DNA of 63,686 bases, the filler included, from Hyphochytrium catenoides (Eukaryota > Protista > Hyphochytriomycota): NCBI GenBank assembly GCA_900088475.1. It is 11 parts of 11 records of this genome, joined end to end, with 100 filler letters (N's around TTAATTAATTAA, not from the genome) between each part and the next. Parts side by side here need not be neighbours in the genome. Positions count along the whole stretch, not along the records: positions 3,080 to 15,049 come from FLMG01000562.1; 10 more parts are not named here. One strand, given 5' to 3'. The notes under the pieces are model-generated. The model saw nothing but the letters and a program-made list of their open reading frames with translations. It was not told the DNA's origin and did not search any database. Within the stretch, counting starts at the first letter, position 1; each line of letters opens with the position of its first letter. Of this stretch, positions 1 to 15,149 are shown piece by piece. A program made the position numbers and the translations under genes.

Positions 1-1570
1 ATTCTTGATTACAGCCTTTCTGTCTGTCATGTTTGAAATTATGAACCTGGTCCTTGATATCTATCTGCATTAACAAAAATGAATAAGATGCAGAGCTCCG
101 TATAGCCAAAGCCGACACAGCGCATCCATTACCTGTAGATGTGGACTTGGTACAAGCTAGTAGCCAAGAGCTGCTCTTGAAATGTACGCGCCAGTGGGAA
201 TGGGTTGGCTGCGCCTAAAACCAGGGGGACGAAGTGGAGGTGCAGACGGAGCTCTGAGCTCTAGATTGTTCGGCAACTGACACTTCGACGACCTTAGCGG
301 CGGCCTCCCTAAGCCTGGGAGCGCCGCGCCGTGTACCGACCGAGCCGCGGGAAACTGTTATAACGGGTACCCAGACTCCGGTAGAATGTTTTCCACTATC
401 GAGGTCATTTGTATCTGAAACTCAGTAGATAAGGCTTCTTCTCGAATACAGGATATCGGATTGTTGCTGACGGATCAGGATATTTCTTATAAATAGCGTA
501 CTGGTCATGGATCCTACCATAGCGCCGTGCCGGAGACGGATTCCAGCAGCGTTCTCATCAGAGAATAATGATGAAGATTTTATTGGGAACGTCTGTTCAG
601 TTCTATGGCCCCTGCGTTGCCGCCTTGCCCTAACCCTAATCTTGGTGGACACTAATTAGTGCTAAGAAGTCACTGGAAAGCGTTAACCCTAAGATAATAC
701 CTTTCGTCCGACACGTAGTGCGTACTATATCTACCCAAAACAGATTTTGGAGAATTTTTTATACAAAAAAAACAGTACGGAGTAATTGATTTACTTATAG
801 ATCGGCGTTGTTCATACTTTACACGGATCGTCAAGGGACCGATTGCCTTACGTTAATCATTGGTAAAAGGTGAGGAGTAAGAGCCATTGAGCGCAGCAGC
901 TCCGATGACGGGGCAGAAGGAAGGAAGGAGGTTAGGCAAGCTATGACGGAACTAAAGCTCATCATTTCATAAATATTGCATTATCAGCCTTGCAATGGCT
1001 GCGGCGACTATGGACGGGTGCAATTCTTTCCTGTGTCCTAGCATCTCTCTTGTCTCCATCTCCGACCTTTGTCTACTACTCCCCAGCAGCCGAATGAGGT
1101 ACAAAATTGTCCGTAAAGTAAAGATAGGTGATGGTGATGATAGGTGATCGTGGTGAGCAGTATGGTAAACGATGAAAGGCTGGACATCCTTCTTCACACG
1201 ACGGTTGTGGGCGGCGGAGATTTAAAGAGAAAGAGGAAGGGAAGGCTAACGATCAAGTACGAACAAGAACACAACGAATGGCTCCTTGAGCCCTAAGCAC
1301 TAATTATTATAAGACTTCTTCTTAACTCCGTCGCATTCCAGCCTCAAGCCGTCACATCATAGCCGAACTACCTCTTTTTCATATTAGATGGTGCTGAGGA
1401 GAAACTATAGCTTTGTCTTATAATACTTCTTATACGCATGCCTGGGCCATCGAGCTCACAGGCGAAACAAGACGGTGAGTGTGGACTTAAGCTACATCGA
1501 CCGATAGGAAAACAACTGTTCCCGATGAAAGAGGTGTGAGCAAGCTGCTGAGCGTCAATCAAACCTGTAT

Positions 1571-2979
1571 TTATAGATGGACGACATCAGCCAGCTTCTT
1601 CCGACTCGTCTCCGTACGCAGGAGAAGCGAACTGAAGCCTCCTACCACCATCATGGTGCTCGTTACCACCAGGAGAAGCGCCACGTGAGCCATCAGCGAG
1701 CCATTCACAAATTGCGCAACCATTGAGCCAACCCGACCGGCAGAAGCCAGAACACCCATTGCAGAGGTTCGGAGGGAGGTAGGGAAAGACTCAGCCGAGA
1801 GAGCATCCAACTGCCATCAATCGAAGCGTTAGGGCGAAAGCGTCAGGGTCTTCCGTTGTACAAGAGGATGGACACGAGGTAAGCAGAATAGTAAGACAGG
1901 AGATGAGTTGAACAGGACTCCTTCACTCAGGGAACTACACATCGCGGGACACTGGAAACGCCGAGGAAGGGAAGTTAAAAGGCGGTAACGTAAGTTTAGA
2001 CCGTACTTACCGCATTCCAAGCAGGGATGGTGAACATATTGAAGAGAAACGCACTGGGTACAATGTACCCTGCACCCTTGTGGGCTGCAAACGCGAACAG
2101 CAGTGCCGAGAGGCTGGCCATAATCATTGACGCGCCAAGAATGCAGCGGCGGCCCACAAGGTCCATGCAGAATATGCTTGCCACGTTTCCTGGAAGGTTC
2201 GCCGAGGCGTAGATGAAGGCGTTCTGGTACGGATCCCTAAGGTCAACCTTGGTGAAGAGTTCGGTAATCCAGGTGCTAATTCCGTACGACCCTGCAGTAA
2301 AGGAGGATCATGGTAGGGTAAGTCAGGACAGGTAGTCATATGTGAGAAGGGAAAAGTTGGCGTGAGAGAGGAAGGTGAAGAGACAGAAACGAGAGAAAGA
2401 GAGAGCACTAGAGAGGAGAGGAGGAAGAGAGAGAGAGAGAGAGAGAAAGGGGGAGGAGACTGAAGGAGCGCGAGTAAGAGAGAGAAAGAAGAGAGAGTGT
2501 TGAAAGCGTGTGAGAGAGGGAAATAAAGAAAGAGAGAGAGAATACATCGAAAACAGGGCAAAGTCAAGTAGAGCCAGAGTTCAGGGGAAGAAAAAATTAA
2601 TGCAAAGAGGAGCCTTTAAGAAGACCACGAAAGAACTGGTACACTGCACTGCGAAGGAGGAAGACGGGCAGATACCGAAGCTCAGCGAAAACCAGACAAG
2701 CAGGAGAATGGCTGTCGTGCTGCGGAGTGACGTCTGAAAGAGCGCAGAGAGCGGGGGCTCTTCATCAGCCTTAGAGATTAATGAGCCCCTGAGTTCCTTG
2801 CCCTGAACTACGTAGGCGGGCTTTCCATTGTGCATGGCCATTAGAGTGAGCACTGACGCCGCTTCCTCATACTTCTCCTTCAGCACGAGGTATCGCGGGC
2901 TCTCAGGCAAGTATTTGGCACTAAAGACATAACACATCGCTGCAGGGATGGCGCAAGCTAGGGCGAACGGTCTCCAGCT
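1571..2979 (-). CDS. MFS transporter, SV2/SVOP-like, 5' part cut by contig end
   Basis: Three exons (2979-2676, 2291-2011, 1810-1571) joined by GT-AG introns. The spliced product has WR...LPESPRYL, VWFSLSFGSYGISTW, DLVGRR (motif A-like) and AESFPTSLRTSAMG, which are sugar-porter/SVOP MFS motifs. Confidence 0.88.
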
Positions 2980-3079
2980 NNNNNNNNNNNNNNNNNNNNN
3001 NNNNNNNNNNNNNNNNNNNNNNNTTAATTAATTAANNNNNNNNNNNNNNNNNNNNNNNNNNNNNNNNNNNNNNNNNNNN
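2980..3079. other. Artificial contig-joining linker (N44-TTAATTAATTAA-N44), first of ten
   Basis: Identical 100-nt spacers carrying the six-frame stop TTAATTAATTAA at 2980-3079, 15050-15149, 39869-39968, 42765-42864, 44988-45087, 47935-48034, 49456-49555, 55037-55136, 57286-57385 and 58640-58739. Ordinary N gaps without the linker lie at 3630-3750, 18304-18327 and 29308-29394, in or next to GA-rich tracts. Confidence 0.98.
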
Positions 3080-3246
3080 GCACCAACGTCTATCTCCTCA
3101 TCCCAGTCATACTCGTCCACTGCTCGCTCCGCTGCTTTCTCTTCTTCCTCGTCCGTCAGGCCCCCTTGTTCCCCGACCTTCGTCTCTTCCACGCCCTCCT
3201 CATACGCATCTTCCCACTCAAAGGCTTCTTCTTCCTCATCTGACAT
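3080..3246 (-). CDS. First exon of a gene with an acidic N-terminus, cut by contig end; family uncertain
   Basis: ATG-initiated MSDEEEEAFEWEDAYEEG...DEYDWDEEIDVG runs into the linker. The acidic/Trp pattern loosely recalls Rad4/XPC N-termini but is too short to assign. Confidence 0.4.
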
Positions 3247-4582
3247 GGCGCGTTATATACTAAGGGATTCCTGTCCTCTCTCTCTCTCTTGATCTGTCTC
3301 TGCGACTCACTATCGCTCCTTCCTCTTGCTGTCGTCGTCGGTCCTTCTCTTTCTCTCCTGGCACCGGCTCACCCTAGTCGCTCACCGCTTAAGGTTACTG
3401 CGTGTAAGTTAAGCGATGCCAGCAGAGTGTGTGACACTGGCGTCCGATAGACGAAAGGGTTGAGAGGAGAGTGAGACGTAACCTCACAGACAAAAAGGAG
3501 AAGAGCCTCAAAGATTTCGAGCAATTAGAATGATCAGAAGAGTAGAGCAACAATGGGGATGCACACAAAGAGGGAGAGAAAGAGTGAGAAGGGATGAGAG
3601 GCTGTAGAAGTGAGAGGAGAGTGAGCGAGNNNNNNNNNNNNNNNNNNNNNNNNNNNNNNNNNNNNNNNNNNNNNNNNNNNNNNNNNNNNNNNNNNNNNNN
3701 NNNNNNNNNNNNNNNNNNNNNNNNNNNNNNNNNNNNNNNNNNNNNNNNNNAACCGACACCATCACCACCTTGCCGCCAAATTTATTACGGGACCCAATTT
3801 TTTCCACAAAGAATTTGTCAGGCAAGGCAAGGTTGCCGTAACCTGATTGGCTAACAGCCAATTAAACTTTAAGAATATTAAATTGTAGGAATAAAGTTTA
3901 TGAAATAAGGAATCAGAATAGCTTGCGCTTTGGAAGCATCTGAAGCTCTACAATTGTCGTGAAGCTTATTACAAGGGCCGCGGGTATGACTGCTCTGTGG
4001 GGTAAGAAGAAGGGAACCTTCGGCATTGTCGGGTTCCTCCGCTGCTCTCCTTGTGGCCTTTGCTCGCCAATATGAAGGGGATCCCAGAGTCGTGTGCAGC
4101 TTGCTAGATGTAACGAACAGAAGAGGTCCAGCGCTAAAAGAGCGGGCATCGTGGAGAGCGTCTCCTTTCAGCAGATGCTGGTTATATAGTGGAAGGGAAG
4201 ACTCTGACTTGCAGCAGCTTGATGTATGGCTGAGGCAACAGTAAGGTCCCTCGCCTTGGTCTGTGATCGAGAGCCTCAACGAGGGCTACCCTGACATAGA
4301 GGTCATTAGGTTGTCTTCCATTCACAGTACAGGCTCCCAAGTCTTCTCGCGCAGTGAGAGAAGTCAATACTCTCGTTGATGCCAAGGAACCGACGACGAT
4401 CCTAAGTGAGATAGCGTACTGCATATCCCGGCTGATCGTAGTCAATTCTTTGTTTTTCCCTGTCTTAGGCCTGGCTTTGACGGGATGGAGGAAGACCGTA
4501 AGGAGACGTCTCCCTGAATTCTTCTGCTGTTCATCCAGGAGGAGGTTGCTGAGAGTCGGCGATGGCGATAGACCCTAAACCC

Positions 4583-7351
4583 TCATTTCATCCCATCGCC
4601 CACTTTGTCAGTTTCCTTGTCATTGCCTGGCGCATCTTCGTCACTTTCGGTTTCTCCTCGTGCCTTTCGTTCCCTCCTCTGACGCTGTCTAGCAGACTCT
4701 TTCTGCTGCTTTCTCTGTGACCACACTGTCATCGTCAGAGGCGGTTGCGGGTATATGACTTCAGAAGAACAAATGAAGAGAGAAGGAAAGTGCGAATTCC
4801 AGTGACTATCATGTTTTTAGAACTAACCGAGGGAAGGCATTGTTCGAAAGCCCACGCCCAGTCGCTTCGCTCTGAAAATCTGGCAAGGATCTGATGGCAA
4901 AGAACGGATCAGTTATGTATATGGATCAAGCTTCCTCCCGAAGTTTTCTCTCACTCTCACTTTCTCCCTCCACCCCCACCCGTCGACGCCTTATCTTGCT
5001 GACCCCGCCACCTGGGACCACAATGATAAATGATAAAGCGATCGGTAGACCAGGGGAGATGGCCCCTGAAGAGAAAGGAAAAGAAATGCGCAGGAAAGAG
5101 TGGCATATAGTACCTCGAAGACCGTGTTAACGTTCAAAATGTGGTCCTGGTAACTTCTGCCTCGGTAGTGCTCTTGGTAGGGTAGACGACACGTCCGAAT
5201 TGCCTTTTCCTCTGCGGCTTTCAGGCTGGTACCCTAGGAGACACCGAGCAGGTGCGATCAGTAGGCTGTAATTCAGTGCCAGAGTATGGGGAGACGAGGA
5301 AAAAAGACGTAGGGCGGCATTACAGAGGCTGAAGGAGGCAACACGTAGGAATATGGTGTGTGGGACCAATAGAATGTCAATGGGGCCAAAGGCAGAATAT
5401 CAGGACCTCACCTTCGCTCTAGATCTATCTACAATTCCTCCTAAAGGGAAGAAGAGTGAGAATGTAAACTTTGGAGAAGAACGTCAGAGGTCTTTAGCTA
5501 GAGAGACGCCTTTTGGAGAAGAAGAGACACTCCAAGAGATTAGCGACGTCTTTTGACGGCAGAAGGAGAGCGGTATAGCCCTAGAGCAGGTAGACTACGA
5601 TAGGACAGCCGTACCCAGCACATAGATAGCGTCAGTCTCTAATTCAGTGAGCACGTTCGGGGAGTCTGGGCTCAGGTAGATTAGCCTCTGCATGTAGATA
5701 GCCGAAAAAATTTTGCTTTAGAGAACACGAGCACAGGTAGGAGACGAAAGAAGAATACGAAGATGAGCCATCGATCTTCATTGCGTCTTTTGCAAGGTCA
5801 GGAAGACTGCACAGATCGGAAAGAGGATAGCACGCACTCCTCACCACAAAACCTGTGAGCAAAGAAAGCGCAACTGAGCCCTCAGCTGATAGTACAAAGT
5901 GCCTTACCGCAGAGTCAAGAGTCTCCGTTAGCAAACCAGCCTCCAGTTGGCAGGCTGTCCAATTCCTTGCTCCAATCTTGTCTAGCGCCTCCTGTACAGG
6001 TCCTTTGTAAGAAGTCAGGACCAAACAGAATGGATCTGGCATCCTTTTGACTGTCGCATAGCAGAGCTTGGTCTGCTGGACCAGACTCTTCAACTCCTGT
6101 TCGTGGGAGAGACGTAAGCGTTTGGACCAGAAGACAAGGGAGGCAACATAGTGAAAAACGACATGACGCGAAATGGAGAGGCCGTCTCAGCATCCTGACT
6201 AAGACGTTTCGTAGGTAGGAGAAACGCCAGCGTAAGAGGAAGAACATTACAGTGACGATCGGATAGACAGACAGCGAGACAAAGCAAGAGAATAGTATGC
6301 AGCTAGGATTGCTCGCAATACTATGTGTTGGACTGTGGAAGAGATGTTTGAATAAAGTGAAGCCAAGCGTTAGAATATTAGGATGTAGGGGATCAGATAA
6401 GAGGAAGTGGCTACCTTGTCACTCATTATGTCGCCAAAGCTCAAATCTATCACAATCTTCCTTCCATTCTGTCTCGCGCTCTCAACTCTAGACTATAGCG
6501 TGGCAACGATAAGAGGTACGACAACGAAAAGCCGCGGATGTGAAAGGTCACTTCATCGTATAGAAAAGACTGGAAGCTTCAAGAAATGGACCGGCGAAAG
6601 AGGTCAGCGATCACCTAACTTAATGTCAAAAAGGGGGAAGCAAGAGATGACGATAAAAGGAGGCCCAAAAGAAGCGAAAGAGGTTGCGTTATCACCTGCT
6701 GAAGAGCCTGCTTTTCCTTTTCTTCAGCAAGAAATCTCTCTCTTTCGTCTGCAAGGTAGAAGGTGAAGAAGACGTCCCAAGTATGTTGTTAGCCATGGCC
6801 CTGAGGACCTCCCAGGAGGAGGATGGAACAACGCGGGCGGCCAAAGGTAGCACTCTGAACCCTGTGGCACAGTCCTGCTCTCCCATCGGCGGCTTTTCGC
6901 CGCTCTATAGTTTCTGGTTCACTATTATGGAAAGTCTCTCTTTGTTGAGATCATTCTTGGCTGTCGATTACTAAGCTGAGACCGGAAGACTCCACCTCAG
7001 CCGTACGTCCCACGAGAAAGGTTCCTCTTTTGCTCTTCTCCGGCTTCAGTGACCTCTTTCTTTTCTCCATCCCTCATCTACCTCTCAATGTGTATCTCTA
7101 TCGCCTTCTTCGCTGCTTCGTGTGCTTGCTTACCGGTCAGCATCTTTTGGCTTACCTCGTGGCATCGCCGCCAAGAACGCATATCGTTTCGTCTTCTTCT
7201 GCTCATACTTTCGCTTGACCTTTTGGGCCTCAACCGCCTTCCACTTCAATCTCTCTGCTTGCTCTCTGGATTCCTGACCTAGATGATGCTTAGATTCGTC
7301 GGAATCACGTCCTTGTAAGGCATGGCTGTCAAGAGGCAGCGTGTCGGCCAT
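4583..7351 (-). CDS. TRMT10: tRNA (guanine/adenine-N1, position 9) methyltransferase, TRM10 family
   Basis: Spliced exons give IVIDLSFGDIMSDK/ELKSLVQQTKLCY, RLIYLSPDSPNVLTELETDAIYVLG/GIVDRSRAK, AIRTCRLP, HILNVNTVFE/ILARFSERSDWAWAFEQCLPS/RK, which are the conserved TRM10 blocks in order. Stop at 4583-4585. The 5' exon assignment (ATG 7351) is less certain. Confidence 0.92.
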
Positions 7352-8226
7352 GCTGTAGGCTGCTGCTTCTGCGTCTTTCTATAATGACCTAATCCTCGGT
7401 CATTCAATTACCTGGCCTCGGCTGAAGCTTCTCTAGCGTCAGAGCTGGGTCCGATGGTGACGGTGCGGCCCTTGAAGATCTTAATAAAGACCACTGAGGC
7501 CTGCTGCTGCTATCAGCAACGCTCTATCGCCCTTCACTGACGATGTTGGCCCTTCTGGTCCATGTCCGCGCGCTCGGCACATGCATTATTACAAAGAACC
7601 CTCAGTCCTCCCCCTGGAGTAGCTGTTGATGGTGAATGTTCTGATGGATTTCTGAGATGCTTGGCGCTTGCAGACAGACTGACCATCGAATGGGATGAGC
7701 TTCCGATCGTCGTCAGCCGCTGGGACAGGCAGCAAGGCGGCTCTTGACGTTACGAAGAGTTTCTCTTTACTTGAGGAGGCAAGCGCTGATGCGTTGGCAA
7801 GAGGGAATCCCATCTGTGCCTTGCAGACATTGGCGGAGCCTTATGTGACAACAAGCAGGAAGTAGTCTCTGGATGGGGCCATTCAGCGGAGTGAGGAGAG
7901 TGGTGGTGCCGAGGCACTGAGATGCAGTCATCAGGAGGACAGGAGGGTATCACAAGCTAGGACTCGGTCTTCTTCTTCTTTCTTCAGAATGGACCGATCA
8001 GTGATAGCGAGGACTGCAATGTCTACAACTTCTGGCTGCGCGTTAACAAATGGCGATAGAAAACAATCTTATAACCCTCCTATGGTTTGTGCTTATGTGG
8101 CACACATAATGAACATCAAAGACAATTCCTGTTGTCGAGCTGGTGCTTCTCCGCTTCCCATCTTTCTTCCCATCCTCCTCCTATTTCTGCCCTGTGTAGA
8201 GATCTACGCTTCTGCTCCGCCGGCAG

Positions 8227-10521
8227 CTAAACTGCCACTCCGCTGTTTGCCGCTATCCGCCTAAGTACTCCTCGTGAGATGTTGATGACAGGCGAGCCGG
8301 CGTTCGCCGGTCTCTCCAGTGGAGAATTGACCGCGTCCCTTCTTGCAGTTTGAAGGTGATGCTTACAGAGATGATCTTGAGCTTCCAAGAGTGCTTGGGC
8401 CACTCTACCGTCAATGCCTAGCTTCAGCGTGTAAGAAGCTAAGTCCTCAAAATGTGTGACTAGTTGCCCTATGGACGAAAGAGACGCGTCCAACGCCCTG
8501 AGTCTGTTCTCTGCGTCTGCCCTTGCGTGGGGATTTGGCTCATACTCTGCTTCCTCTTCATCCTCGGCAGGGGGTTGGTATCTCCCACGAATCCTCGCTT
8601 CTTCGCCATTCTCATCTCCTCCGCCTCCTCCCTCGGGGTGGCCACTAAGATAGTCCTCCAGTATCTTTTGCCTGAGCTGGCTGTTAATCGTTTCTGCATC
8701 GCCCTCATCGTTCGCTATGTCCAGTGCGCAGACAGCTGAATAACGGTCAACGTCATTGTATATCTTGCAGTTTTCAAAGGTAGGTTCGGCCACCTCCATA
8801 TCGGGCAGTTCCTGGTGGAGATGAGAGATGTGGTCCAGCAGGTCTGAAGTGGCAGGATCACTGCGTATATCGTACCGAGGAGGAAGTTGGGGAGGAGTAG
8901 CAGAAGGAGTTGAGGAAGAAAGAGAAGTATCCATTGCCCCTGAAGGCGCCGGATGTTCTGTTGAACGAAAGCCTGACTTCTCATAGCATTCAACCAGGAA
9001 GGAAGACGGAAGCTCATCCCAGGCCTTCGATATCCAATGAACCACCTTCAGCATATCCACAAACTCCTCTCTGCCGTGTGTCCTTAGTTCCTCGGTCCCT
9101 CCACTCTCGATGACAGAGAGAAGGTAAGAAAGGAGCTTATTCCTATACCGAAGCTTCATGCTCTCCACCGCTCCCTGGTGCAAGGGATAGTGTTCAGGGT
9201 GAAGCTCAGAAGGAAAGTATACCATCTTGACGTGCTTGAGAGAGATGCAAGAAACACCAGAGTGAGCCACATTGTTGTCCACAAAGAGCAGGACATCTCT
9301 TTTCTGCCTCTCCATCTCTCTCTCAAAGTTCTCTAACCAATCGTTGAAGATATTCTGTGTGACGGCGGCATGCTTGTTGGCGTACCAAGCGACAGGTAAA
9401 CAACCAGGAAAAGTTCCTCTGTCCAAATGCCGGAACCTCCTTGGCTTATACACATTGTTAACCACAGCAACAGGCTCTTTCTCTCCCGCAAAGTTGCAGC
9501 AGATAAGGAGAGTCACCTTACGGGAGGTGGAAGAAGCGGCAGACGTAGCAACCGAGAGCGATGCGGTGCGCTGCGACCCTGCAGCTAATCTTGCCTTCTC
9601 TGAAGCTTGGAGAACCGTATGAATGGGAAGATCGTCATAGTGCAGCGCTGTTTCTGTGAGAGAGAAGACATCTCTCTTCTGATAATGCCTCATTAAGAGG
9701 CTAAGTCTTTGCCTCCAGCTCCCCATTGCATCTTTTTCTCTTCCTCCGTTCTCCTCTCGTCGCCCTCCCCTCAAGCCAGCCATTGGGCTCCCAGGGAATG
9801 AGGAAGGAGGCTGCTGGGAGAGAGAATGAACCGCTTTCTGAGAGATGTTATGTCTCTTCTTGAAAGACTCCAGCCATCCGTTAGACGCTTTGAACTCAGT
9901 GTTCCCAACTTTATTGGCGAAGAAAAGAGCCTGCTTCTGGATGACCGGACCGCTGACGGGCAGCCCCTTGGCCTTAGCTGCTTGATACCACTTCCCCGTC
10001 AAGTGGTTGATCACATCCGCCGGGGACTTGGTTACTTTCCGGCGAGAATCTTTGTCAAAGTTACGTGCATAGTCTTCTAGGTATTCCGCCTTGCGCTTAA
10101 GTAGGCGCTGGATGGCTGAGCGAGAGACTTGAAAGTGGGCAGCTAGGGCGCGGATGCTCTTTCCTTGTTCTTCGGCCGTAGTGATGAGCTCCACCTTCTT
10201 CTCAAGAGAGAGAGAGACACGTTGACCTCCTCCGCCATGAGGGATTTCTCTCTCTTCCCTTCCTCCTCCTCGCCTACCTGACCTGTGGGCGTTGTCATCT
10301 TGAGAAGAGGAAGGCAGATGTCCAGTGAGGCGTGTCGCTCCTGACATCAATACAGCCGGTATGCGAGGCTTTGGAACTTGTCGTCTCCGATCCCAGTCCT
10401 CGGAGTCCAAACCTGGGGCTCCTGGATCTTGGTGATGCTCCTCAAGGCCGCTATGTAGCTCGTGGGCGTCTCCCTCATGCTGCCGCCGTCTCCTGCCAAG
10501 CTCTGCACCTTTGCCGTACAT
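8227..10521 (-). CDS. CENP-B/TIGD-like protein derived from a pogo/Tigger transposase (764 aa, intronless), catalytic triad degenerate
   Basis: HTH-psq-like (SLSLEKKVELI...LAAHFQVSRSAIQRLLK), CENP-B HTH (GLPVSGPVIQKQA...FKASNGWLESFKKRHNI) and DDE_1-like core (KVTLLICCNFAGEK, WYANKHA, LLFVDN, VYFPS). First Asp motif reads FSLTET (canonical NADET) and third reads YPLHQG (canonical QPLDQG). Confidence 0.93.
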   Translation of the reverse strand: MYGKGAELGRRRRQHEGDAHELHSGLEEHHQDPGAPGLDSEDWDRRRQVPKPRIPAVLMSGATRLTGHLPSSSQDDNAHRSGRRGGGREEREIPHGGGGQRVSLSLEKKVELITTAEEQGKSIRALAAHFQVSRSAIQRLLKRKAEYLEDYARNFDKDSRRKVTKSPADVINHLTGKWYQAAKAKGLPVSGPVIQKQALFFANKVGNTEFKASNGWLESFKKRHNISQKAVHSLSQQPPSSFPGSPMAGLRGGRREENGGREKDAMGSWRQRLSLLMRHYQKRDVFSLTETALHYDDLPIHTVLQASEKARLAAGSQRTASLSVATSAASSTSRKVTLLICCNFAGEKEPVAVVNNVYKPRRFRHLDRGTFPGCLPVAWYANKHAAVTQNIFNDWLENFEREMERQKRDVLLFVDNNVAHSGVSCISLKHVKMVYFPSELHPEHYPLHQGAVESMKLRYRNKLLSYLLSVIESGGTEELRTHGREEFVDMLKVVHWISKAWDELPSSFLVECYEKSGFRSTEHPAPSGAMDTSLSSSTPSATPPQLPPRYDIRSDPATSDLLDHISHLHQELPDMEVAEPTFENCKIYNDVDRYSAVCALDIANDEGDAETINSQLRQKILEDYLSGHPEGGGGGDENGEEARIRGRYQPPAEDEEEAEYEPNPHARADAENRLRALDASLSSIGQLVTHFEDLASYTLKLGIDGRVAQALLEAQDHLCKHHLQTARRDAVNSPLERPANAGSPVINISRGVLRRIAANSGVAV

Positions 10522-10941
10522 ACTGCTCTAATGCCGCCACTAATGTTATCTGCTGTTGAGTTCCTTGTATCGGTGTCGTTCCCTGGCTTGCACGCCCCGG
10601 CCAAGAGAGTACCACGCACCACGAGGAGCTTGACTTAGCTCGAATGACTTAACCGCCCTCTCAAGCAACAGCCATCGGACCAGGCCAATCTCCCTGTGTC
10701 GTGGTTGACAGCCTGTGCCTATCGGTTCGAAGGTGCTGGTGGTAGGATAGGATAGCGTTTAGTAGACAAGAAAGCGAAGTGAGTCTATCGTATGTCTTCC
10801 TTCGCTTCGTCTGGGCTTGTACTACGGAGGTTGAAGATGCGAATCCGAACTGAGAGAGACCGAGAGAGGTTCTACCTTTGGGAAGAATGCCTTTTGAAGG
10901 CTATCTGGGCTCTCCTAGACATTGGGGACAATTCAAACGTA

Positions 10942-10985
<44 letters not shown>

Positions 10986-10996
10986 GGGGAGAGAAA

Positions 10997-11030
<34 letters not shown>

Positions 11031-11945
11031 AAGAGAAAGAGAGAGAGAGAGAGAGAAATAAAAAAATGAGAGAGAGAGAGAGCAGAGCGGGCTGGAGAGC
11101 TCAACTGCAATACAGAGTGTAGATCAAGGTATGGAAAGGGCAAGACTAGATATTTGGCGAAGGTCCACCGACCCTTCTGGTGGGCAGAGAGGTATTGAGG
11201 GAGAGTCATCGGTTTGTTTCTGTCCCTGAAAAGCAGTGTGGGTTTGGCAAGCGCTGCTTCTTATCCCTGTCTCTCTTCCTCACACTGCGTGTTTGGGACA
11301 GCCATGACCGCAGCCCTTAGAATACCGGTAACGGCAATTTCTCACTGGGATTTAGTCGAAAAGATCAGGGCATCCCTACACACACACCTCGGTTTTCTCC
11401 CAATATCTATCACGTATGTCACAATATCGACCGTGGTTATTTTGATCTTTGATGGTTATTTACCACTTCAGATTAATCGTGGTTGAGTTTGAGAAGCTGC
11501 AGGAAGGCTTCAGGTCATCATCCGTTAGACTCTTCACAGATAGACGGCCGCGGACTAGTAAATGAAAGTGCCAAGTTGTAGCCCGGTGGTGAAGCAGTTC
11601 ACATGCTCCTCCTCTAGCTATCTCACCTCGAGGCTCAAGGAGGGACGAGTAGGCGATTGCTATTTTGCCGTACGAGGAGGCACAAGATGGTAGTTCTACT
11701 CCATTGCTAGTCGTACGCTACAGAAATTGAGTATGGCAGGGGTGGGGTCTTGCTTGGCCTGTAAAGGTTCTCTCGGACGCATGGAGAGACTAACGGCCTG
11801 TGCACAGAAGAAGTATGTTCGTCATAGAAGGTAGTGTCATAGTATCGTAGAGGCGGTGTCGTGCCAGACCTTAATATTATTAGGGGTTTCGCTGAGTACT
11901 AATGTTACATTTAGAAGAGCTAACCAGGAGCGGATTGGCAGCATG

Positions 11946-13677
11946 TCATAGCTGCCCCTCCCGCACCATCCTTTCGATCTCTCGGTTCGCTCTCTCCCTT
12001 TCCTCGGGAGAGAGATCGTAGTATCTTTCGCCTGTGTTCTTCTCCCACTGCATGGTATCTAAGTTAGAGCTAAGAGAAGGACTATGTACTTCTGAAGGGA
12101 TAAAGTAGCCAATAGTAAGAAGTAGCAGCAATGTTGTGGAGCAACGTAGGAGGGCCGGGCACTTGCCTGTCTGACATTCCGAATGGAGTGCTTGCTGGGT
12201 TCATATGTGTGATGAGATTTGAACTTCTTATTGTGGTTTGCCAAGAGCTGCTGCAAGTCCAGAAGATCTCGATCTATTTCAAAACGACAATAGTTAGCGG
12301 CAAGAAGGAGCAAGCGAGTGTCAGACATATAAGCCAGAGGACAGAGCGCGATGACGGAGGCTACGCCGGTAATTGGAGGTCGAAGCTTTACGAGCCTAAG
12401 GAAGAAAAGAGAGAAATGGCCATTCAGAGCGAAGGAACTGCGAACAGGTCTATGCCATAGCAACCAACAGCAGCTATGACCTTCTTGTGACATCTTGCCC
12501 CTACTGGAAGACGGGCGTACTTTTCCTCCATTGGCTTTGGCATCTGTCGATGCTTTACTACTAGTCTTCAGCCTTGAAGAAGAAGAAGAAGATACCGACG
12601 CTTTGCTGGAAGCTGTTCGACGGCTTGGTACCTTCGACTGGGCACTTTCCGGACCAGAGGTGGAGCTAGTGTTCACCCTTCCGATGACCCTACCATCCCC
12701 CTAGTATGTAAAAGGAAATGGCGGACCCGGACCACAATCACAGACAAGAAGAAAGGAGAGGAGGTCAGCCAAAGATAGGGCGACCCGAGACATAAAGGAG
12801 GAATGGCTTGACAGGTAAGGGGCAAGTATCATCTAAATCTCTAAAATAAAGGTTTGTCCGGTGTCGCCAAGCCACTTTGGTCACGGTAAAGAGATCATAG
12901 AAGACAGCGAAAGTCATGCGATGCGGAGGGCAAGACAGAGGAAACATATAAGATCCTTCGCACCTGTTGGGCTCGACCTCTATCCTCCGTCCGTCCTGAA
13001 GCGGTAACACTATGAATGGCAGCCCTTTTTCTTCCCGCTTCTGGGATATCGTCCTTTGTGCTCATTGCATTCTCCTCCTCTTCCTCCTCTACTTCTTCTC
13101 CTGGCTGGACTCGAAGTGCAGAGCCTGTGACAAAACAATAAAAGATGGCAAGGTGAAGGTCTGATTGACGATCCGGAGCTAAAGGGGTTAAGCTAGAGAC
13201 AGAACTCTACCACGAAATAAGCGATAGAGAGCTTTGAGACAACCATGGCACCCTACCGAGGTGCTTGCCCAAGTTATGGGAGGCAGCAGATGCACTCAGG
13301 CCTGGAAGCTTTTTGTCGTCCTCTTCTGCTTCTTTGTCCCCTGATCGACAAAATTAAGCGTGACATCATTTAGCCAAAACGGAGAAATGTGCTCAGCTAC
13401 CTGGACGTCCTCTTGATGATCTTTTCTTGGAGCCAGGCGCCAAAGAAGAACTTGAGGGAACTGGCAAGGAGGGGGCCCCATTGCTCTCCTTCAAGGCTCC
13501 ATAATGACTCTCATGAGGTACATCAAACCACGGATCGTGCTTGCCTTCCTTTGGACAAGATTCCCCCTGCTCTATTAACCGCTTCAGGTCGGCAAACTTG
13601 TGCGGCACATCGAAATCAAAGACTTCTTCTTCCAATTTCCCACCAGGCTTTGTCCGACGGCGGGTAGCTTCTTCCAT
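11946..13677 (-). CDS. Multi-exon protein with an N-terminal TPX2-like Aurora-binding motif, Ser/Lys-rich middle and a small C-terminal helical domain
   Basis: ATG 13677: MEEA...EEEVFDFDVPHKFADL...HDPWFD. The last exons splice to LQQLLANHNKKFKSHHTYEPSKHSIRNVRQ/WEKNTGERYYDLSPEERERANREIERMVREGQL*. Internal exon boundaries were only partly resolved. Confidence 0.7.
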
Positions 13678-15149
13678 TTTTAGGCCATGAAGGCCTGTAT
13701 ATATAGGCAAGGCGTTAGATTCTAGTGAAGTCTTTTCACACTCGAAAGGTTGAGAAGCTTCTACTTTGGAACGTTGATATTTGCTCGCTCCACCGAGGAA
13801 GGAGTAAGTGGCCAAGAGTTACAGCAGGCTAGGGTCTTTGCATCTTGTCAGCTCACTACTGCGAGGGTTCGGGCAAGCTGGATAGAAGTACGGCAGAAGA
13901 AGGGAAGGGTTCACTTGTGTCGACTGGCCGCAGTTTTCCACAAGATCTTCCACTTCTAACACCGAGGGGAAAGGAGTCTTTTCAGGTTATACCACTACAT
14001 TGAGGACAACTTCGTATGGTTGTTTCATGAGGTTCACCTACGATGAGCTGTGCAGACCGTAAGTGATGCACTGTACAGCGCGATCGGATGCATAAGGCCC
14101 GATGACAGAGCTTCAAGGGTGGTTTATCATCAGCAATAGAGTGCTCACAGTTCACAGCAACCAATTTGCGGCGCCAAAGAGGACCGCTAACGCCAGTTAA
14201 ACCGCTAACGGCTATCCTGGCCGTTACCAGGTGAACCGAATACCTGATGTCTATGTATGAGCCAACCTCCTTCTCCTACCTGTACTACCTTGTACGCAAG
14301 CAGAGTCTTCCTTCCCAGCAGCAGATGGGAGAAGTAGAGAGGGGAGATGTACATAAAATAGAAGGTCAGCAGGAAGGGCAATGCGGTGGACGATACCAAC
14401 AAAGAGGAAGCGTAAGGAAGACAGGATTTGGAGATACAGTTCCTCTTTCCTCCTTACTCACTACTACTACTACTAACGGAAAAAGCACGCTTTCAAGTGA
14501 TGCCGAGAGCAGAAGATGACGAAGGCGAGGTAGGTGGTGCAAGCCCGATGCCCGCCCGCCCCTTTCCAGATGAGAAGACGCCAAGTCAGTAGGCAGGAGG
14601 ATGGTGCCATGTCGAATACGCTTTAGACTTTGGGACGCACTGAACTAATATTAATATTGAGAAAGCAACAAGCGCTTTGCCATGCAAAGTTCAATCCCTC
14701 CCTACCATCCAACAACTATCCGCACTCTTGAGCGAATGGGAACTAGCACCTGTACCTTGTACTTGTAGATGAGATCGAGGTGTTGCCTTAAAGTCCTTAT
14801 GCATTTGTGAACGGCATCAAGCGATGAGTTGGCGGTGAAAGCAAGGCGAGCTTCAATTCTGGGCCTGTAGTCCCATTGGATATGGGCGGAATCTTGTCGT
14901 CCACGTATGATTGGCTCTGTAGGAGCTACGTATGACCAATTACTTTAGATGCGCTATTAGTTCGACCAACGAGAAGGCAATGACCTCCAAATTTTAGAGA
15001 ATCTACAGAAGCGGTCGGGGCTGTTTACTTTTATATATAGCTACAAATGNNNNNNNNNNNNNNNNNNNNNNNNNNNNNNNNNNNNNNNNNNNNTTAATTA
15101 ATTAANNNNNNNNNNNNNNNNNNNNNNNNNNNNNNNNNNNNNNNNNNNN

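Follow-up and report, generated by a model that had tools for sequence, protein, structure and literature searches.

A probable host gene derived from a catalytically inactivated Tigger-like pogo transposase in the stramenopile Hyphochytrium catenoides

Few transposases have been domesticated as often as those of the pogo type, examples being CENP-B, TIGD1-7, JRK, POGK, POGZ, Abp1/Cbh and CAG, and the described cases, as far as we could find, all come from opisthokonts. Drosophila CAG and vertebrate TIGD2-7, JRK/JRKL, POGK and POGZ illustrate how recurrently and independently such genes have arisen while keeping the DNA-binding domain (PMC4231638, PMC7386202, PMC7325037). In mammalian CENP-B, a pogo-derived bipartite DNA-binding domain is joined to a transposase core that has been inactivated and to an acidic stretch ahead of a C-terminal helical module, and the fission-yeast proteins Abp1, Cbh1 and Cbh2 form a small paralogous family that represents an independent pogo-like domestication in a microbial eukaryote, with experimentally shown roles in centromeric heterochromatin and retrotransposon silencing. 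As for the elements themselves, Tigger was reported in animals and in three red algae, the families named for stramenopiles being Passer, Lemi, Mover and Fot-like (Gao et al. 2020; PMC7386202). Here we describe a gene of the hyphochytrid Hyphochytrium catenoides, found in a stretch of 63,686 nucleotides that was analysed as a whole (the window), which is probably a domesticated, catalytically dead Tigger-like pogo transposase acting as a host gene in this stramenopile. It would then likely be a further example of repeated pogo domestication, adding an instance rather than a principle.

The gene lies on the minus strand at positions 8227-10521 as an intact open reading frame of 764 codons that runs from ATG to TAG (stop codon at 8227-8229) and lies at 5151-7442 of contig C1326. 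The runner-up frame on the same 11,970-nt contig has 213 codons, and an open frame of 766 codons would arise by chance with p ~1e-16, assuming 3/64 stops per codon. The N-terminal 95 residues (10237-10521) are of low complexity and without homology, neither the homologues nor the paralogue described below aligning with them; the start codon is uncertain, a further Met being present at residue 59. Two low-complexity insertions interrupt the aligned regions, one at residues 231-266 (9724-9831), missing in the paralogue and in the homologues and modelled with pLDDT <50, and a Ser/Ala-rich one at residues 307-332 (9526-9603), delimited by alignments and the AF2 model. Both were considered as unspliced in-frame introns, a possibility for which no convincing donor or acceptor signals were found and which seems less likely.

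The best database matches are metazoan Tigger-like or "TIGD4-like" proteins (Branchiostoma TIGD4 and Patiria miniata XP_038077439.1), with 29-38% identity and an equal domain order, namely a CENP-B_N-type HTH, HTH_Tnp_Tc5, DDE_1, an acidic tract and C-terminal helices. Compared with these proteins, the gene of H. catenoides stands apart by its T/D/H triad, by the lack of a PIP box and of terminal inverted repeats (TIRs), by its single copy, by the two insertions and the long N-terminal extension, and by its stramenopile host. The bipartite DNA-binding domain (residues 99-224; 9850-10227, minus strand) consists of a CENP-B_N-like HTH at residues 100-148, which at 19.6 bits falls under the 21.2-bit Pfam cut-off, followed by HTH_Tnp_Tc5 at residues 177-229 (E=5.8e-16). 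It aligns in sequence with the DNA-binding domain of human CENP-B (1HLV, E=4e-14), and its AF2 model (pLDDT >90) retrieves the same structure in Foldseek (E=6e-6, 32% identity), so that homology with the corresponding domain of mammalian CENP-B is found by both routes; the Abp1 domain (1IUF) gives a marginal sequence match (E=0.075).

Downstream, an RNase H-like domain of catalytic DDE_1 fold spans residues 268-520 (8962-9720, minus strand). The entire Pfam DDE_1 profile is covered by residues 334-513 (E=6.9e-31), and the AF2 model resembles Mos1, SETMAR and Sleeping Beauty in Foldseek. Gene and fold differ in this respect from CAG, which lost the DDE domain. In the alignments, the catalytic positions where D/D/D is expected read T289/D415/H448, each within a clearly recognizable motif. 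T289 (9655-9657) replaces Asp 1 in SLTET versus NMDET, D415 (9277-9279) is the retained Asp 2 of the motif FVDNN, and H448 (9178-9180) replaces Asp 3 in YPLHQG versus QPLDQG, all on the minus strand. The loss of Asp 1 and Asp 3 required at least three nucleotide changes, and E290, the conserved Glu adjoining the first position, is kept. The 32 residues that separate D2 from H448 fall inside the Tigger range of DD29-36D (PMC7386202).

The DNA from 7200 to 11600, which includes the gene and both flanks, occurs once in the genome (61 Mb), repetitive DNA nearby being confined to a simple repeat rich in GA and to 550 nt of the contig's end. The GA repeats and the low-complexity insertions at first suggested a coccidian genome, an origin that was rejected because a SAG domain was lacking and the top named matches for HSP90 came from oomycetes (84-85%). 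No TIRs with a TA target-site duplication stood out from chance within 2 kb on each side: the longest inverted match between the flanks is a 12-nt CT/GA low-complexity run, against a mean of 10.6 and a maximum of 13 after shuffling. Open frames of at least 95 aa in the flanks had no Pfam match, and no Rfam match was obtained either. The original prediction, which had been made from the sequence alone, proposed an intact 764-codon frame, two preserved HTH domains, the replacement of Asp 1 and Asp 3 around a conserved middle DN, and the lack of a TIR/TA pair; each of these points is upheld by the alignments and searches above, with CENP-B_N itself remaining sub-threshold. It had further called for a check of copy number, and no near-identical copies with TIRs came to light. 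We regard the single copy as weak evidence in this genome, because the pogo gene on C608, with its DDD triad intact, likewise occurs in one copy and because only 1.79% of the assembly was assigned to transposable elements (PMC5795050). For H. catenoides, transcriptome sequencing has been reported as well (PMC5795050; RNA-seq under study PRJEB13950), and the strain is a highly heterozygous diploid with a SNP frequency of about 2.75% (PMC5795050).

The nearest protein relative in the genome, 33-37% identical, is an intact, single-copy paralogue of 644 codons on G000:C491, with a G/D/R triad. It is the sister of our gene (SH-aLRT 100, stem 0.63) in a tree that was computed under LG+G4 with SH-aLRT as sole support and leaves out full-length CENP-B, TIGD and Abp1. 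By the Nei-Gojobori method, pS between these two genes, which are paralogues and not orthologues, is 0.75 (saturated), with pN at 0.447 overall, 0.443 in the DDE domain and 0.305 in the DNA-binding domain, the best-conserved part (55% identity). Since pN is much lower than the saturated pS, we conclude that both frames were held open by selection, although a pN lower than pS between old paralogues could partly stem from selection on lineages of still-active transposases. The surroundings of D3 are degenerate in both proteins, the NTTS..QPLDQG context having been lost. The parsimonious reading of this common degeneration is that inactivation preceded the duplication; alternatively, the two paralogues may have been inactivated later and independently, as the residues at D1 and D3 differ (T/H versus G/R).

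A PIP box of the form Qxx[ILM]xx[FY][FL] is present in 62 of the 162 nearest homologues and missing in both H. catenoides paralogues; at its site in our gene (8329-8355, minus strand) the sequence reads LQTARRDAV. This C-terminal PCNA-binding motif occurs in pogo and in many Tigger-like transposases, without being universal, and its role in pogo is attributed to Warbrick 1998 in PMC4231638. The dead single-copy sister, the frames held by selection and the loss of the PIP box in both genes together make domestication likely, and with a pogo ancestry, a dead catalytic triad, no transposon hallmarks, a single copy and a paralogue comparison at saturated dS, it is in our opinion the best reading of the locus. 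Three of the six domestication criteria of Feschotte and Pritham, as they are listed in PMC4231638, were assessed, and all three point to domestication: hallmarks are absent, the ancestry is that of a transposase, and the coding sequence is intact and constrained. Conversely, of the features of an autonomous pogo/Tigger element, the gene has the bipartite HTH and DDE_1 and lacks the DDD triad, the TIR/TA signature, multiple copies and the PIP box. The cases of CAG, TIGD, JRK, POGK and POGZ were built on synteny, dN/dS and expression, whereas ours draws on evidence from within the genome only.

The best-surviving alternative, which we nonetheless consider unlikely, is that the gene is a decaying relic devoid of host function: the last copy of a Tigger-like transposon, inactivated so recently that its frame has not yet had time to decay. 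Several observations are in line with this scenario. An exhaustive HMMER search of 1.84 billion representatives retrieved no orthologue in other organisms, its best relatives (among 7495) being 35-38% identical; a word search yielded best matches at 29-33% identity, a scan of the JGI metagenomes was blank, and exact look-ups, in which records of this genome may be lacking, did not retrieve the sequence. Moreover, the other pogo-family ORFs of the genome are variously preserved, some being fragments and one being interrupted by a TAG, and the low-complexity insertions and the N-terminus without homology look untidy. Against a recent death, sibling copies are entirely lacking at the DNA level, though a recently active family normally leaves some, and the nearest relative has diverged to the point of synonymous saturation, yet both frames (644 and 764 codons) are intact. 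In addition, two catalytic residues, the PIP box and the TIRs were lost without the appearance of one stop or frameshift, and strong scores and confident fold predictions are still obtained for both the DNA-binding domain and the DDE domain.

Domestication as a host gene thus being favored, we considered a more specific version, a functional analogue of CENP-B or Abp1, i.e., a dimeric chromatin protein of centromeres, satellites or transposon silencing that would dimerize through CENP-B-like C-terminal helices. The homologous DNA-binding domain is compatible with this idea, as is the C-terminus of the protein, in which a Gly-rich then acidic tract (residues 632-662; 8536-8628) precedes a confidently predicted module of three helices (residues 664-680, 684-700 and 705-732; 8326-8532, both on the minus strand; AF2 pLDDT 88-95). 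Such a module is a candidate for self-association, which is possible given its predicted helical structure, and PMC4231638 describes self-association of the pogo transposase and several of its derivatives, together with their repeated recruitment as CENP-B-related proteins. However, the module lines up with helices that are conserved at the C-terminus of Tigger-like transposases (in an alignment anchored from residue 481), an equivalent acidic tract is found in ordinary Tigger-like homologues, and the CENP-B dimerization domain went undetected by every approach. Indeed, the last 150-250 aa gave no sequence match in PDB and Pfam even at E values up to 10, including to the CENP-B dimerization domain (PF09026/1UFI), a Tigger-family profile did not match that domain either, and fold searches with the helices returned only generic helical hairpins (Foldseek E of at least 3, VIA Z of at most 7.3) with nothing specific to 1UFI. 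A language-model look-alike search with the C-terminus retrieved unnamed clusters only. The data contain no link to a satellite, a CENP-B-box-like target or a centromere. To our knowledge, most domesticated pogo genes, such as the TIGD genes, JRK, POGK and POGZ, have not been described as centromere proteins. We therefore hold the CENP-B/Abp1 analogy, and with it a tie of the gene to CENP-B function, to be improbable.

These results divide the original claim of domestication. A pogo-derived, dead and single-copy gene, whose frame was kept by selection according to the paralogue comparison, stands, and the acidic tract followed by helices is present as announced. What finds no support is the proposed likeness to the CENP-B dimerization helices, as well as the idea that a "full CENP-B-like layout" is special: this layout is simply the ancestral Tigger one, the distinctive feature of our gene being the loss of the PIP box. 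Independence from the domestications of mammals (CENP-B, TIGD) and fission yeast (Abp1/Cbh) is retained on taxonomic grounds, the host lineage being unrelated to that of CENP-B and the sole sister in the tree being a paralogue from the same genome.

Two further explanations concern transposition itself. An inactive transposase could be kept to repress or titrate an active relative residing in the same genome, in the manner of KP-type repressors, and H. catenoides does possess DDD-intact pogo genes, on C608 (where a C-terminal PIP-like box is preserved), C1404 and C1164. These genes, however, sit in other clades with ~27% identity to ours, a common DNA-binding specificity thus being unlikely, and the genome contains no intact member of the gene's own clade; we judge such a regulatory role very unlikely. 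Additional dead pogo genes, on C1571 and C4601, belong to a second clade. Least probable of all is a still-active transposase with noncanonical catalytic residues, or an element mobilized in trans. In its favor, D415 and E290 are kept; against it, TIRs, a second copy and the PIP box are absent, and no studied Tc1/mariner-type transposase that we know of remains catalytic once a residue of the DDE/D triad has been lost.

Our working model for the domesticated gene is that it was exapted from a Tigger-like pogo transposase and forms, with the C491 paralogue, an old pair whose reading frames stayed open while synonymous sites saturated. The protein has kept its bipartite helix-turn-helix region for DNA binding, along with an RNase H-like DDE domain that is well folded in the model; gone are Asp 1, Asp 3, the PIP box, the TIRs and every further copy. 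It would presumably no longer be able to cut or join DNA and would act as a sequence-specific DNA-binding protein, whose target may be a motif descended from the ends of the ancestral element, with the dead DDE fold as a putative scaffold and the C-terminal helices perhaps mediating self-association, as reported for the pogo transposase and its derivatives. Candidate roles include the regulation of transcription or chromatin, the control of transposons and a function at the centromere.

With a catalytically dead pair under constraint in a hyphochytrid, the pattern of pogo domestication would reach into the stramenopiles, and DNA-binding regulators would become more accessible in a lineage that has hardly been studied. 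A bolder view is that hyphochytrids possess a family of pogo-derived DNA-binding proteins that is old and has undergone duplication (our gene, the C491 paralogue and possibly C1571 and C4601) with a CENP-B/Abp1-like role in centromeres, heterochromatin or transposon control. If true, convergent recruitment of this kind would be seen for the first time beyond the opisthokonts, and from a Tigger-like lineage unreported in stramenopiles, but we see it as a long shot. The pair resembles Abp1/Cbh1/Cbh2 in being a small paralogous family of a microbial eukaryote. Of note, two proteins from ENA, P0001 and P0006, were entertained as orthologues given the "LTE" motif that they have in common with our gene at D1. 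They are placed elsewhere in the tree, and the Thr common to this position is therefore convergent.

The gene at 8227-10521 on the minus strand is an intact reading frame of 764 codons, from ATG to TAG, on an 11,970-nt contig (C1326, window positions 3080-15049) that contains a 121-N scaffold gap at 3630-3750. The runner-up open frame on the whole contig has 213 codons, and the probability of a 766-codon open frame arising by chance is near 1e-16. Pfam detects HTH_Tnp_Tc5 at residues 177-229 (E=5.8e-16) and a full-length profile match to DDE_1 at residues 334-513 (E=6.9e-31), and scores CENP-B_N at residues 100-148 with 19.6 bits, below the 21.2 cut-off. Since residues 99-224 align with the structure of the human CENP-B DNA-binding domain (1HLV, E=4e-14), the first helix-turn-helix is real despite its subthreshold score. 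An AF2 model of residues 95-530 (mean pLDDT 84.9) has the Mos1 transpososome (E=1e-6) and 1HLV (E=6e-6, 32% identity) as top Foldseek matches, together with the transposase domain of SETMAR and the catalytic domain of Sleeping Beauty. Alignments with 11, 19 and 161 relatives, in which the motif contexts are unmistakable, place T289 at the first catalytic position (SLTET versus NMDET), retain the second Asp as D415 (FVDNN versus FVDNA), and place H448 at the third (YPLHQG versus QPLDQG); the 32 residues between the last two lie within the DD29-36D range of Tigger elements (PMC7386202). The intact frame, the two helix-turn-helix domains, and the replacement of Asp 1 and Asp 3 around a conserved middle Asp were all correctly described in the original prediction.

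No orthologue was found in the public data searched: the best relatives are 29-33% identical in a word search and 35-38% in an exhaustive HMMER search, none of whose 7495 relatives aligned past query residue 606; a JGI metagenome scan gave no match, and exact-sequence look-ups did not retrieve the protein from a set that possibly excludes the host's own records. The host genome holds at least 13 DDE_1 matches and, on contig C491, a paralogue with an intact 644-codon frame at a unique locus, which is 33-37% identical over the whole length, C-terminus included. In a tree of 73 proteins (LG+G4), the two are sisters (SH-aLRT 100; stem 0.63, tips 0.82 and 0.85) among metazoan Tigger/TIGD4-like sequences. 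The nearest named sequence is a sea-star "TIGD4-like" protein, itself catalytically dead. DDD occupies the aligned catalytic columns in no more than 94 of the 162 closest homologues, and the triad is altered in many of the proteins nearest in the databases, the Patiria TIGD4-like and Latimeria TIGD6-like ones among them; with so many dead copies, the deeper placement may suffer from long-branch or compositional attraction. Two ENA proteins (P0001 and P0006) with Thr at position 1 are not sister to our gene, so the shared residue is convergent.

The paralogue has a G/D/R triad. Because both copies lack Asp 1, Asp 3, the NTTS..QPLDQG context around Asp 3 and the C-terminal PCNA-binding motif (PIP box), inactivation would most parsimoniously predate the duplication, although the replacing residues differ between the copies. 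Nei-Gojobori counts on the codon alignment of the pair gave a saturated pS of 0.75 and a pN of 0.447 overall (37% amino acid identity), with values of 0.79 and 0.305 for the DNA-binding domain (55%), 0.67 and 0.443 for the DDE domain (37%), and 0.88 and 0.516 for the C-terminal helices (24%). Constraint is strongest at DNA binding and, as the comparison is between paralogues, could partly date from an era when the lineages were active elements. That 644-764 codons remain open at such divergence requires selection on the frame, our main new argument for domestication. In terms of the six Feschotte-Pritham criteria for domesticated transposases, the gene has clear transposase ancestry, lacks transposon hallmarks and keeps an intact coding frame under constraint; synteny, expression and phenotype make up the other three. 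We therefore retain the domestication part of the original prediction and propose that the gene, a member of a duplicated pair, probably encodes a DNA-binding protein that is sequence-specific, catalytically inert and domesticated independently of the opisthokont cases. A decaying relic is unlikely, given the frames kept open under saturated pS.

The predicted acidic tract followed by helices is present (residues 632-662, then AF2 helices at 664-680, 684-700 and 705-732, pLDDT 88-95). An alignment of 61 Tigger-like C-termini, however, shows a family-wide module in which an acidic stretch precedes two amphipathic helices and Qxx[ILM]xx[FY][FL] stands at the end, so that the "CENP-B-like layout" is the ancestral one. 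The end motif, cited as the PCNA-binding box of pogo transposase (Warbrick 1998 as cited in PMC4231638), occurs in 62 of the 162 closest homologues; our protein has LQTARRDAV at its position, and loss of the PIP box is the derived feature of this C-terminus. The proposed resemblance to the CENP-B dimerization helices was not detected: the C-terminus gave no Pfam or PDB sequence match at E<=10, a Tigger-family profile matched the DNA-binding domains of CENP-B and Abp1 and nothing C-terminal, and fold searches returned generic matches only (Foldseek best E=3; VIA-align best Z=7.3, to CsoR and other helical hairpins). The protein shares with CENP-B a homologous DNA-binding domain, and its C-terminus has no detectable specific counterpart there. 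Dimerization has been reported for pogo transposase and proteins derived from it (PMC4231638), which makes self-association plausible on general grounds. The centromere or silencing role originally envisaged would draw on the shared DNA-binding domain; with the C-terminal module generic, we consider it somewhat less probable still than a relic.

No terminal inverted repeats were found, in agreement with the earlier inspection by eye: comparing the 2-kb flanks yields no inverted match longer than a 12-nt stretch of CT/GA, against a mean of 10.6 and a maximum of 13 after shuffling. Near-identical copies, which would have spoken against domestication, are absent: within 7200-11600, the only DNA that recurs in the 61-Mb assembly is a GA-rich simple repeat at 10941-11090. 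A transposon-encoded repressor is very improbable, and a still-active element is the least credible reading, given the replaced triad. The flanks are likewise unique, except for 550 nt at the contig end (3080-3629), which are 91% identical to positions 26-585 of C1748 in the same assembly; an allele left uncollapsed in this heterozygous diploid (heterozygosity is about 2.75%; PMC5795050) or repetitive DNA beside the scaffold gap could account for the match. The GA-rich repeat, a low-complexity stretch of roughly 150 nt about 420 nt upstream of the ATG, recurs on many contigs, with at least 125 matches at 70-91% identity that are often grouped into arrays, both direct and inverted.

The assembly searched (61.0 Mb, 4759 records) corresponds to the published 4758 scaffolds plus a mitochondrial record, of which only 1.79% was assigned to transposable elements (PMC5795050). 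Its cytosolic HSP90 is nearest, among named sequences, to oomycetes (84-85%) and then ochrophytes (about 80%), placing the host within stramenopiles and outside the well-sampled oomycetes. That pogo transposases have been domesticated repeatedly is well documented (PMC4231638, PMC7386202, PMC7325037), so the gene is a further case of a known phenomenon. Its modest novelty lies in the hyphochytrid stramenopile host and in the Tigger-like source lineage, which Gao et al. reported in animals and three red algae and did not name among stramenopile pogo families (PMC7386202).

Contigs C608, C1571 and C4601 carry a second, separate pogo clade. The first has a 1114-codon frame with an intact DDD triad and keeps a PIP-like QVRITSFF at its C-terminus, but exists as a single copy; the other two, with altered triads (E/E/D and H/N/R, respectively) in open frames of 732-1075 codons, may be further domestications. 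A third pogo type, on C1404 and C1164, combines an HTH_psq plus HTH_Tnp_Tc5 DNA-binding domain with an intact DDD triad. Elsewhere, a eukaryotic ENA contig (ERZ25071447:ctg83894) bears two tandem pogo-derived genes (691-3531 and 7696-9531; 946 and 934 aa) with a T/E/N triad, its Thr convergent with that of our gene, and a second CENP-B_N plus HTH_Tnp_Tc5 module after the DDE domain.
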